DNA of 63,738 nucleotides, filler included, from Reticulomyxa filosa (Eukaryota; Protista; Foraminifera): assembly GCA_000512085.1 (NCBI GenBank). It is 19 parts of 19 records of this genome, joined end to end, with 100 filler letters (N's around TTAATTAATTAA, not from the genome) between each part and the next. Parts side by side here need not be neighbours in the genome. Positions count along the whole stretch, not along the records: positions 1 to 4,947 come from ASPP01025797.1; 18 more parts are not named here. The stretch is one strand, 5' to 3'. This document shows positions 1,290-4,947 of the stretch, in pieces (position 1 is the stretch's first letter; each line of letters opens with the position of its first letter). The notes beneath the pieces were generated by a model, which ran no database searches, was not told the DNA's origin, and saw only the letters and a program-made list of their open reading frames with translations. A program made the position numbers and the translations under genes.

Positions 1290-2574
1290 ATGAGTACGCT
1301 GCAATTAGTTTTGGTAACTTATATTCAAATCTTTTCAAAAAGCTACTTATCCTTATGTCTATGTACTTTGTGACTGAAAACAGTCTAATGAAGATATTCA
1401 GTTTATTACCGAACACTGGACTCGATCGTCTGACGTTTCATTTGGATGGAATAATGATATATGCAATATTGTTGCTAAATATGTTATGTTTTTCATTATT
1501 AATATACTAATAACATTACAGTTAATTAAATTAATACAGGTAAACAATAATTTCAATTCTAATCGTTTCAGAAAGTTAAACAAATTACTTAACACATTGA
1601 CTGGATCTAATTGTATTGTATGGAGCATTGATTATTTGGCATCCAATGGTGTTCAATTTATTTGTTCTGGATCAGGTGATAAAAGCGTGCGTGTTTGGGA
1701 TCTGAAAACCAATGAACAAATTCGATGTTTCAATGAACATTCAGCTACAGTTTTTTGCGTTAAATTCTCTCAACATCATAAAATTAATCTTAATCGTGAT
1801 GTCATTTGTTCATCATCACAAGATAAAACAATTCGTTTTTGGGATGTAGATAACAACAAACAACTAAAAATATTAAATGGACACAATGGTGGTGTTTTTT
1901 GCATTGGATTCTCACCACTTGAAGGGGGCCGATATTTATTTTCTGGATCTAGCGACAACACGATACGTGTATGGAATGTTCAAAGAGCTAATTTATTATA
2001 TACTTATACTGGTCATACAAATATTGTCAGATGTTTAGATTGTTCACCAGTGCAAACTAATAGTGGAAGTGGATATATAATTTGTTCTGGATCAAATGAT
2101 AAAACCGTTCGTGCATGGGATATAGAAACAGGCAGACAATTCATGGCATTCCATGGACATTCAGAAGGTATTACTAGCGTAAAATTTGGCTCAAATGAAT
2201 TAGGATATTATGGTGGATCAAATTTAATAATATCTGGAGCATTAGATAAAATTATTCGTTTGTGGGATATTCGACATCAAAAACATATTGGATCATTCTA
2301 TGGGCATAATTGCGCCATTTATGACATTGAATTTTCACCGTTTATAATAAATAATAATGATATTTGTTGTAATTCAAATGTGATATGTTCAGCATCACAT
2401 GATAATACATTACGTTTTTGGGATTTAAGGTCATGTTCCAAAGAATTATATGTCCATCGTGGTGATAAAGATGATAACGGAATTCTTAGTTTTAAGTTCA
2501 TAAAAACGAAAGATCAATGTAGTTACAATATATGTTTATCAACAAAAAAAGGACAACTTCGTTTTTGGGGATAA
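1290..2574 (+). CDS. WD40-repeat protein (spliced: probable short exon MSTLQL from ~1290, linker exon 1384-1482, WD40 exon 1540-2574)
   Basis: About seven GH..WD repeats (SGSGDKSVRVWD, SSSQDKTIRFWD, SGSSDNTIRVWN, SGSNDKTVRAWD, SGALDKIIRLWD, SASHDNTLRFWD), ending QLRFWG. Upstream exon EDIQFITEHWTRSSDVSFGWNNDICNIVAKY is followed by a GTTATG..CAG intron at 1483-1539. Start codon uncertain. Confidence 0.9.
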
Positions 2575-2765: not shown

Positions 2766-4947
2766 TTATGCCATCAAAGTTGCATTGATCCATACACTCT
2801 GTTGCAATGTTTGGTAGCCCTATCTTGGATTGGTTGGGTCAAAAGAGAACAAGCAAGCAGGATTCGGAGTCGATGTTGTTCTTTGTTGATTCCTGTCTAT
2901 CCCATTGCAAAAATAAATTCTCTTTGTATCTTCCAAGCCCACAATGCACAATGTGTATTTCCATCCACTTACAACTTCCACATACTTTCAATAAGTGACT
3001 GTATTTACCTCCCAAATACCACCACCTCATATGTACATGGTTGATCCAAAAATACCAAGTCTATAAACGTTTATAGGACATCAAGAATGGGAAAATGCAA
3101 CCCACATGAAAAGCATTGGCAAACATCTGTATATAGTATGTGGCCTCCCAGGTTAATAGATTGTTTATCATTTTGTTTTTTTTTAATTTTAATTTTTGTT
3201 TGCTTGGACCAATCCACCACCGCCTTTGCATCCATAAGCCTTGCCTCATACTATGTATACTTTATCCGAACTTCCTATATTTCAATATGTATTTTCTTCA
3301 TTCACATGATTTTTGAAACAAAAAAAGGAATTTACTGCTTAACTTGCCATACACTTAGCATTTTGCCAATCAGAGCCAACATCTTCATATCTTCCAGTGC
3401 GAGAGTCAACACGATACAAACATCCCCCTCCAGTGCCATCTCCTGCTAGTCCGCACACAGCGTAGATGAAATCTCCAGCATTAGTCATGTTAGTACAATT
3501 CGCATATCCTTTGCAAACTTCAGATTATATTCTGGTCTCAACATCAACATCCCAAATTCCACCTTTTTGTTTGTTTAGTTATTTGATTTTTTTATAGAGA
3601 AAAAGTATGTCACTTTTCCTTCTTTGTTGCTACAATGTAAAAAAATATACATACTGTCTCCTTTTGCGCCAAAGGATGTGCCAGCGCAAATGTACAACTT
3701 TTCATTAGAAATGCGACACATTGATTGTCCGTTTACGTATCCATCTTCGCGAATGCACGTGTATTTGTGTGGCGATGCGATGTCCACGAGATATATACAT
3801 CCTCCTCCATTACTTCCTCACAAACGATGAAAATTTTCTCTTTTACTAAAAAGTTATTACTGACATAGTCATCATCAAATCACATCCATGTGTCTTGTTT
3901 AAACTTATGCAGCTGGAACAAAGTATACAAAAATTAACTAGTTTTTTGTTTCTCTCAAGCCAGAATTATCTTCTTCGATTTGTTCTTTTTTTTCATCCGC
4001 TGGTTTTTGTCTGTACAATCTCTTTCTCTTTTTCTTCAATCTCTTTTTCTTCTTTTTCTTATTTTTCTTTATCTTCCAAAGATTTGAAGTAATTGTCTCT
4101 GTTTTTGATAAACTGTTTGCGATGTCCTATTTTTTTAAAATTCACACTTGTTTGTAGTTTATCAATTTTTTCTCTCAATCCTCAATTAAAAAAAGACAAA
4201 AATGCGACATACCAGGCTTAAATTTCATTTCCTTCAAATCATCATCATTCAAGTCTTTCAAGCCTTCAACTTTGTCGTATCCTTGATCCACTAAAATTTG
4301 AAGATATGAGACTGTTTTGCAGTCTTCTGTGATGCCAGCAACACCATCTTCATCATTTTTATCAGTGAACCATTCCTTGAGCAAACTGGACACAGTCACT
4401 TCTTTTTTGCCATGATCGTCGTCATCATCCTTATTAAATCTCGAAATCTTTTTTGTTTGGTCGCAAACATCAATTAACAAGTTTATTTGATTCGATTTTG
4501 CAAAAGGGGAAAAAAAAAATGTTGCATTAAAATAAAGTTTACAGCTTACATATTTTTGCTTATGTGGAATTTTGGATTTGATGTGATCAGTAACGTATTC
4601 ATAGGCCAAGTTGCGTTCGCCAACGTCAAAAAGACGTTTTCTTTTGTATACGCAGTGACTGTCTTTTTTGGAATCATAAAAGATCTTATGGTAGAACTGC
4701 ACCTCACAAACGACCGAAGTTCCTGGACACATCACATTTACAAGTAAGTAACGGTAGCCAAAAGGCATCTTTTCGGGATCAAATCGGTCCTTGGCACGCA
4801 ACACGCCACCTTTCATGTCTGATTTTGAGTTCGCTACATTCTCAAACACGCCAAATGCTTTATACAAATCGACAAATGAATCAAATACAAACAAGCAACG
4901 CAACAAATCCGTCAATTGAGCGTGATCTCCTTTGTAAACGTAATAAG
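2766..4947 (-). pseudogene. RelA/SpoT-like nucleotidyltransferase + SAM domain + charged coil + beta-propeller, multi-exon, 5'-truncated by contig end, with nonsense codons and frameshifts
   Basis: YKGDHAQLTDLLRC..LRAKDRF..GYRYLLVNV..VCEVQFYH (RelA_SpoT-like). Spliced SAM YLQILVDQGYDKVEGLKDLNDDDLKEMKFKPG|HRKQFIK (intron 4212-4127). Repeats of ~45 aa, W/Y.N...M....(L/I)Y.(V)CG...GG.(I/L)(W/Y).VD..G.Y. Stops at 4059-61, 3246-48, 3027-29, 2988-90 and 2820-22; frameshifts near 3880, 3820 and 3530. Confidence 0.75.

Follow-up and report, generated by a model that had tools for sequence, protein, structure and literature searches.

Synthetases of the (p)ppGpp type are regarded as bacterial and plastid enzymes. 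The eukaryotic protein SARM1 is arranged as ARM - SAM-SAM - TIR, the TIR domain being a NADase and the tandem SAM domains forming an octamer. Outside plants, the known eukaryotic use of a synthetase domain is as an effector domain, so far uncharacterised, at one end of fungal NLR-like proteins (PMC4986451), which combine an N-terminal RelA_SpoT effector with WD40 or TPR recognition modules and undergo extensive domain shuffling (Dyrka et al. 2014, PMC4986451), and RelA nucleotidyltransferase (NTase) effectors are also employed by prokaryotic conflict systems (PMC7159879). The present analysis was performed on a stretch of 63,738 nucleotides from the foraminiferan Reticulomyxa filosa (the window; 19 parts joined end to end with filler) and concerns the minus strand at 4945-2766, which lies on the complete 4,947-bp contig ASPP01025797.1 and is, in our judgement, likely to be a foraminiferal gene copy in decay, the intact form of which encodes a RelA/SpoT-type NTase, a SAM domain, a charged linker and a six-bladed propeller. 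Window exons were compared singly, by reference, and folds were predicted on the intact homologue P0153 as a proxy.

In fold and chemistry the nearest described enzymes are the bacterial small alarmone synthetases (SAS) and the Rel synthetases; in concept they are the fungal RelA_SpoT NLR-like proteins, SARM1 and bacterial CapRel. With RelP, RelQ and Rel (RelA/SpoT homologues, RSH) the foraminiferal family has in common the fold, profile homology (E 1e-8), the basic residues, the Asp, R-x-K-D, Gly-Tyr and Glu-x-Gln, whereas it differs in being eukaryotic and showing no hint of a role in an organelle, in being without hydrolase, TGS and ACT domains, in its fusion to SAM and a propeller, in being too divergent for the Pfam family PF04607 and in its altered motif positions. 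The fungal proteins are alike in that a eukaryotic RelA/SpoT-type enzyme end is joined to a repeat or propeller recognition module, but the foraminiferal proteins are without NACHT or NB-ARC, have SAM in the place of the oligomeriser and have a propeller that is not WD40; moreover, the fungal members match PF04607 and the window protein and its nearest relatives do not. SARM1 follows the same logic (recognition domain, SAM and nucleotide-metabolising enzyme in one chain), but its enzyme is a TIR NADase and not a pyrophosphokinase, its domain order is reversed, its SAM domains are in tandem and there is no homology outside SAM. CapRel and other toxic SAS, together with Tas1, also have a RelA/SpoT-fold enzyme with an appended domain that controls it or accompanies its delivery, and were among the structural and sequence matches; they differ in being bacterial defence or toxin proteins whose appended domains are unrelated and which are without SAM.

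In a three-frame translation, a single minus-strand frame was open from 4945 to 4178 and read YYVYKGD..LTDLLRC..RAKDRF..GYRYLLVNV..CEVQF followed by the first half of a SAM-like segment. Downstream of SAM, a Lys/Glu-rich stretch was followed by repeated units of ~45 amino acids over three frames, and the six blade remains of ~45 amino acids ended with ..WINATLMA and TAA 2768-2766. The gene is multi-exon and has lost its 5' end at the contig edge; the N-terminal helical extension of the intact form is absent from the window, lying beyond that edge. On alignment with P0153 (tblastn), residues 66-412 corresponded to 4945-3659 and residues 414-634 to 3563-2769, co-linearly and with a joint E of 7e-167, so that the match is not due to chance; the final C-terminal residues were shared, as was the natural stop TAA 2768-2766, which is placed as in P0153, P0152 and P0154. 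The exon-intron map is as follows (a slash marks a splice junction).

4550..4945 (-): exon 1, 132 NTase codons with TDLLRC (Asp), RAKDRF, GYRY and CEVQF (Glu-x-Gln); 85% identity to P0153 66-197
4448..4549 (-): intron 1, 102 nt, GT..AG, in frame and stop-free, tat/gtaagc ... aaaaaag/att; absent from transcripts L005 and L003
4213..4447 (-): exon 2, acidic linker and first part of SAM; aligns with P0153 198-278
4127..4212 (-): intron 2, 86 nt, GT..AG, interrupting SAM; the KFKPG/HRKQFIK join agrees with P0153, P0152, P0003 and L001
3939..4126 (-): exon 3, end of SAM and Lys/Glu-rich linker; in-frame TAA 4061-4059 and +1 change at the A5 run 4004-4008
3860..3938 (-): intron 3, 79 nt, donor ta/gttaat, acceptor tgtcag/t
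3655..3859 (-): exon 4, blade 1 and start of blade 2; frameshifting deletion at 3818-3819
3563..3654 (-): intron 4, 92 nt, donor a/gtatgt, acceptor aaaaag/gt
3344..3562 (-): exon 5, blades 2-3; in-frame TAA 3527-3525
3275..3343 (-): intron 5, 69 nt, donor a/gttaag, acceptor atatag/ga
3210..3274 (-): exon 6, part of blade 4; in-frame TGA 3248-3246
3031..3209 (+): inverted segment, 40 codons of blades 4-5 at 3034-3153 with TAA 3064-3066; most of a former intron at 3154-3209
2766..3025 (-): last exon, blades 5-6; TGA 2990-2988 and TAG 2822-2820, natural stop TAA 2768-2766

Every intron is GT..AG, and the donors belong to the types GTAAGC, GTATGT and GTTAAT/G. Intron 1 (4549-4448), being in frame, is translated within the long mechanical open reading frame (ORF). 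Removal of intron 2 joins KFKPG to HRKQFIKNRDNYFKSL, the uninterrupted counterpart in P0153 being 'KFKPGHRKQFIKSRDHYFQAL', and splicing of intron 3 yields ..ETKN-Y-NNFLVKEKIFIVC, in agreement with '..ENANYSKFLASERIFLICG' of P0153. An earlier note on this DNA had proposed one spliced minus-strand gene running from the NTase through a SAM domain completed by splicing of intron 4212-4127 (KPG/HRKQFIK) to a charged coil and about six 45-residue blades, with only fragments of it in the ORF list. The reconstruction agrees throughout: the motifs were found where the note had placed them, co-linear with P0153, the splice join matched uninterrupted homologues, coil and blades were present in order after SAM, and the NCBI model was as fragmentary as the ORF list. 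This model, the database protein P0001 ('TRAP-related protein [Reticulomyxa filosa]'; it agrees at 100% identity with a portion of the minus-strand ORF), covers 4915-3578, starts within the NTase, splices around the end of SAM into the +1 frame and stops in the intron after blade 1. Because it bypasses the lesions by starting inside the NTase and skipping the end of SAM, it is not faithful, and the gene is reflected neither in its name nor in its structure.

Among 151 family proteins compared with the window by tblastn, none had a propeller like that of the window; intact co-linear relatives were reached via the contig of P0002 and a word search using its downstream ORF. P0153 is an uninterrupted 634-codon ORF on the environmental contig L005 (367-2271) with NTase, SAM, linker and six blades. 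On a second contig, L003 (838-2322), SAM, linker and six blades are in one ORF, with the NTase just upstream in an overlapping frame and a shift at an A-run between the two. Because P0153 is a single ORF and that of L003 runs from SAM to the last blade, the propeller is placed in the same gene as NTase-SAM. The earlier note had reckoned with intact co-linear relatives, of which P0153 is one, and also with paralogues that have the propeller in a separate gene, an arrangement contradicted by both ORFs. That the propeller exons of the window make up a gene distinct from the RelA/SpoT-SAM exons, as the fragments in the NCBI model and ORF list might indicate, is extremely improbable given P0153 as one ORF and the L003 ORF from SAM to the last blade, both of the same order and endpoint as the window. 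L005 and L003 are without any of the five uninverted window introns and end in A-runs ~125-160 nt past the stop, and for this reason look like assembled mRNAs, so that the intact relatives are apparently expressed.

The enzyme domain belongs to the RelA/SpoT synthetase superfamily, as a divergent member that retains its catalytic residues; this identity follows from family profile matches, members passing PF04607 and matches of the fold model. An alignment of 112 NTase domains (A3) was used as a profile against solved structures and matched RelP/YwaC (6fgk, E 1.1e-8), RelSeq (1vj7, 4.1e-8), Tas1 (4.3e-6), E. coli RelA (2.6e-5) and the Rel proteins of B. subtilis and S. aureus, the alignment proceeding motif by motif. 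The family motif is given first in each line below, followed by that of the canonical synthetase.

K-x3-R-x3-K: R-x-K-x3-S-x3-K
TDxLRC: DxxGxR strand with the Mg-binding Asp
RxKDRF..PFGYRD: RxKDYI..P..NGYxSxH
CEIQ: EIQIRT

Near-invariant columns of A3 hold K, R, K, Y, D, R, K, G, Y, D, N, E and Q, and the catalytic Asp (equivalent to RelSeq D264), the Glu-x-Gln (E323/Q325) and the basic ATP-phosphate residues are aligned in the family; the window itself shows TDLLRC, RAKDRF, GYR and CEVQF, the N-terminal K-x3-R-x3-K falling beyond the contig edge. PF04607 (RelA_SpoT) was matched by 4 of 58 scanned relatives (P0072 with 33.6 bits against a cut-off of 27, over the same stretch as the family profile) and TIGR00691 (spoT_relA) by three family members. 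An AlphaFold2 model of P0153 1-300 had a mean predicted local distance difference test score (pLDDT) of 84, above 90 over most of the NTase (residues 1-195), and the top 50 Foldseek matches in the PDB were all Rel, RelP, RelQ, CapRel, Tas1 or SpoT (E 1e-7 to 9e-5; template modelling score, TM, by target 0.55-0.66 for the synthetase matches).

Several observations weigh against the reading proposed here for gene and family. PF04607 gave no match for the window ORF at E<=1 and none for P0001-P0006 at E<=10 (P0001 being the database model of the window). The family departs from canonical motifs in an Arg two residues earlier after the Asp (DxxR vs DxxxxR), in Leu for the His of GYxSxH and in His for the Arg of EIQIRT, and the window NTase differs at 2 of 18 strongly conserved columns, where 27 of 30 close relatives differ at none. 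The Pfam miss on single proteins is a limit of sensitivity and not an absence. A shallow 5-sequence profile searched against the PDB returned only a chance thermonuclease match, where the 112-sequence one succeeded. Nearly all features of an RSH synthetase that can be tested computationally were found, the Pfam threshold being the one exception. Of what the earlier note had expected, an NTase like PF04607, the homology, fold and residues were upheld, but the window ORF fails PF04607 itself; a lack of any NTase-fold match, which the note had allowed for, did not occur, all top 50 Foldseek matches being of RelA/SpoT type and the A3 profile matching RelP and RelSeq.

As a separate observation on the NTase, the NCBIfam model of the XopAD/skwp type III effector matched this domain in 16 of the 112 A3 members (P0145 and 15 others; best E 1e-7), the match being confined to the last ~110 model positions (1998-2104 of 2133). 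Because of this placement, the XopAD/skwp bacterial effectors are suggested to end in a domain related to the family NTase. When the 112 family members were scanned with PADLOC, only four weak matches were obtained, to PDC-S33.

Behind the NTase lies a SAM domain. In the window, exon 2 alone gave a Pfam SAM_2 match of E 0.09, under the cut-off because the intron splits SAM, and P0153 passed the model with 22.2 bits (cut-off 20.5). Eight SAM segments of the family, made into a profile (A5), matched the Caskin-1 SAM (5e-12) and also SHIP2, ANKS1 and Eph receptors. The SAM profile matched 44 of 162 fetched proteins and, in 41 of the 43 that scored for both domains, SAM stands directly after the NTase; therefore NTase-SAM is the conserved core of the foraminiferal subfamily, with the propeller as one of many interchangeable additions.

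The C-terminal region is a propeller of six four-stranded blades. The model of P0153 338-634 had 24 strands, a pLDDT of 75 and a predicted TM score (pTM) of 0.82, with TM of 0.70-0.76 to six-bladed Kelch propellers (KLHL12/17/3, SAKe designs) and 0.65-0.69 to TolB; it also matched NHL, PD40 and SGL propellers (ESM Atlas). The earlier note had expected both SAM and a propeller from structure searches, and the former was obtained by profiles and the latter by fold. The window keeps the remains of all six blades, disrupted and in the same order as in P0153. Six-bladed Kelch, NHL and TolB propellers and DUF6923 likewise have six four-stranded blades, and the repeat signature of P0153 (W-x-N-A-T-x-M ... 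Y-I-V-C-G ... G-G-G-G-L-Y-x-V-D) is its own, being particular to this propeller. Relatives of the region found by word search were P0153, P0154 and the blades-only P0155; Pfam propeller models were passed by none of P0153, P0154 and the window blades, P0154 reaching 16.7 bits on the Kelch model (cut-off 50), and the distant P0155 passed DUF6923 with 43 bits. A word search with P0154 and Atlas features found few relatives, with weak leads to DUF6923 and DUF4394; the propeller profile had no sequence match in the PDB, and a metagenome locus scan with the propeller alignment yielded no confirmed locus.

That this copy is decayed, as the earlier note had stated, was evident on comparison with every intact relative. 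Nine lesions were counted, all 3' of SAM: six in-frame stops (4061-4059, 3527-3525, 3248-3246, 2990-2988, 2822-2820 and, on the plus strand in the inverted block, 3064-3066), two frameshifts (+1 at the A5 run 4004-4008 and a deletion at 3818-3819) and one inversion of 179 bp (3031-3209). L005 1937-2006 matched window 3083-3152 in an orientation opposite to every other L005 match (blastn), and the 40 residues of blades 4-5 otherwise missing from the gene are encoded by plus-strand 3031-3153 (tblastn, E 1e-13 to 9e-16 against P0153, P0154 and P0152). On the plus strand the inverted codons are followed by G/GTTAAT.., a donor resembling two others in the gene, and because the codons run into this donor the block would have carried part of an exon and the greater part of the following intron; its breakpoints fall within the short palindromes CATG and CATATG.

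It could be argued that the gene is intact in the organism and that stops, shifts and inversion are errors of the draft assembly, the contig being short, one frame change lying in an A-run, and related environmental contigs showing +1 shifts at A-runs too. We consider this very unlikely: the six stops comprise all three stop codons and lie at sense-codon positions of all intact relatives, the second shift is due to the deletion of several bases away from any homopolymer, the inversion is cleanly bounded and takes in part of an intron, and the NTase also bears unusual substitutions. As regards the A-runs themselves, five +1 frame changes were seen in Lys-rich stretches of the family (window 4004-4008, L003 ~560-580 and ~960-990, L005 ~367-413 and L002 1172-1182), the A-run of L002 ending AAA-TAA with the +1 frame open to the contig end; they could be homopolymer error, real indels or slippage/frameshifting.

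The NTase-SAM part of the window copy (~232 codons upstream of the lesions) is still open and lesion-free, and the chance that nine lesions would all fall 3' of SAM under an even spread is ~0.008, on account of which the NTase-SAM stub may have stayed under selection for a time. The same figures, and a first stop just past SAM, would suit a shortened functional gene, that is, a sensor-less NTase-SAM ending at TAA 4061-4059 that would be either a constitutive enzyme or a regulator or decoy joining full-length paralogues in assemblies via SAM. This reading is unlikely, though less so than assembly error, since 2 of the 18 highly conserved NTase columns are changed and no short form occurring naturally came to light. 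P0003, which had looked like one, was rejected, since an A8 run precedes its stop and it continues in the +1 frame, which is open to the contig end. Because of the two changed columns, the open NTase part may be drifting too. A three-sequence Nei-Gojobori comparison of the propeller gave a nonsynonymous distance (dN) of 0.123 on the window branch vs 0.128 and 0.161 for the intact relatives, with the synonymous distance (dS) saturated and the comparison unable to date the decay or to reveal relaxed constraint; these values point to a coding history that was long and constrained and to a comparatively recent decay. The window copy would thus yield an NTase-SAM stub at most, and is most likely a pseudogene, judging from its lesions.

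The family to which it belongs is real, apparently undescribed, and expanded in foraminifera. When 1.84 billion representatives were searched with a profile, relatives numbered 1,080 at E<=1e-3, of which 139 reached E<=1e-10 and 62 E<=1e-30; the traceable close relatives (E<1e-35) were from foraminiferal transcriptomes (Ammonia, Elphidium, Nonionella stella, Bolivina argentea), and more distant ones included Guillardia theta and environmental sequences. In a limited full-text literature search, by which novelty is unproven, no paper was found that ties foraminifera to ppGpp or Reticulomyxa to a SAM fusion. Architectures of the subfamily were as listed here by protein.

P0012: NTase-SAM-TLDc
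P0023: NTase-SAM-C-type-lectin-like
P0030: kinesin-EF-hand-NTase-SAM
P0029: three ubiquitins-NTase-SAM
P0015: WW-NTase-SAM
P0013: UBA-NTase-SAM

Other members had galectin, AbfB, LRR, TPR or choline-transporter domains. A paralogue within R. filosa (L001; ASPP01020499, 536-3294) has an N-terminal helical region, NTase exons, SAM, a linker and a different C-terminal domain of ~190 amino acids for which there was no Pfam match; it is annotated as three separate genes and adjoins BEACH-WD40 genes. Pfam scans of P0153, of the window ORFs and of 20 relatives taken singly listed no match to NACHT/NB-ARC, and none was among the 25 commonest Pfam families of 58 relatives scanned together; because no STAND NTPase was detected, the proteins would not be placed in the NLR/STAND class.

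Two further contexts of the NTase were noted. P0139, a distant environmental protein of 665 amino acids, combines an extracellular contractile injection system (eCIS) core domain (Pfam E 3e-31) with the NTase, which may be a cargo or toxin domain of such a system. In an environmental transcript (L004 18-1540), C1, ZZ and FYVE-like zinc fingers (Pfam E 5e-9 to 8e-5) lie directly upstream of the NTase ORF in an overlapping frame.

With regard to function, the NTase keeps the ATP-phosphate Lys/Arg/Lys, the Mg-binding Asp, R-x-K-D, the base-stacking Gly-Tyr and the catalytic Glu-x-Gln and, because this set is retained, probably acts as a pyrophosphokinase. ATP would be its pyrophosphate donor, and the acceptor, which is not readable from sequence, would be either the 3'-OH of a purine nucleotide, with a (p)ppGpp- or (p)ppApp-like product, or the 3' end of an RNA. 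SAM directly behind the NTase would bring enzyme units together, and its near-constant partnership suggests that the units act in assemblies. The propeller would recognise a ligand or partner and control the enzyme; paralogues swap in lectin-like, TLDc, ubiquitin, WW, UBA or kinesin/EF-hand modules, and as the appended domains vary, recognition or localisation is suggested to differ between paralogues. The full chain of active pyrophosphokinase, SAM assembly and propeller control is proposed tentatively, as somewhat more doubtful than probable.

The NTase could alternatively be an RNA 3'-end (tRNA) pyrophosphokinase like the toxic SAS CapRel and FaRel2, so that its triggering would shut down translation rather than produce a small-molecule alarmone. 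CapRel (7ztb, 9erv) is among the top fold matches (E ~2e-6), the NTase occurs in toxin-like contexts such as the eCIS-core-NTase protein P0139, and the model for XopAD/skwp effectors recognises 16 of the 112 members, but RelP, RelQ and Rel score equally well or better and no sequence feature discriminates the acceptor, so that we hold this to be rather unlikely.

An immune-like role for the family is likewise doubtful, if slightly less so. At about the same level stands an ordinary intracellular signalling or regulatory enzyme (of the cytoskeleton, ubiquitin or calcium) whose propeller is a Kelch-like adaptor and which is not an immune-type receptor. The partners that accord with it are a kinesin motor with EF-hands, ubiquitin repeats, UBA, WW, TLDc and choline-transporter domains, and the best propeller matches are Kelch substrate adaptors; yet further partners resemble those of immune receptors, namely lectin-like modules (C-type lectin, galectin, AbfB), LRR and TPR, the family has undergone a large expansion specific to its lineage in which domains were shuffled, and the decayed copy suggests rapid turnover. 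As a broader proposal, which we regard as possible but improbable to a similar degree, foraminifera and, more distantly, protists such as Guillardia may have a cytosolic signalling or immune-like system in which a RelA/SpoT-type pyrophosphokinase-SAM core with interchangeable recognition modules makes a (p)ppGpp/(p)ppApp-like messenger or pyrophosphorylates RNA, as a STAND-independent counterpart of SARM1 and the toxic-SAS sensors.

The interest lies in a large foraminiferal family in which catalytic residues are kept, SAM is directly fused in 41 relatives and many recognition or targeting domains are attached. If the enzyme is active, it would mean testable alarmone-like or RNA-pyrophosphorylating signalling in the eukaryotic cytosol, a new enzyme-oligomeriser-sensor chain arisen independently of TIR/SARM1 and of STAND receptors, and a handle on cell-autonomous defence and signalling in Rhizaria, of which, to our knowledge, almost nothing is known. 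The window copy matters mainly as the way in to the family and as a witness to turnover of its genes.

Elsewhere on the contig, at 1486-2574 (+), lies a convergent neighbour gene for a WD40 beta-propeller protein of 362 amino acids (Pfam WD40 E 8e-44, six repeats), whose propeller is unrelated to that of the RelA/SpoT-SAM gene. Its first ~45 codons resemble AT-rich non-coding read-through, and for this reason the gene likely has upstream exons. Between the contig start and the WD40 gene, the region 500-1250 is very AT-rich (18-21% G+C) and holds short ORFs only.

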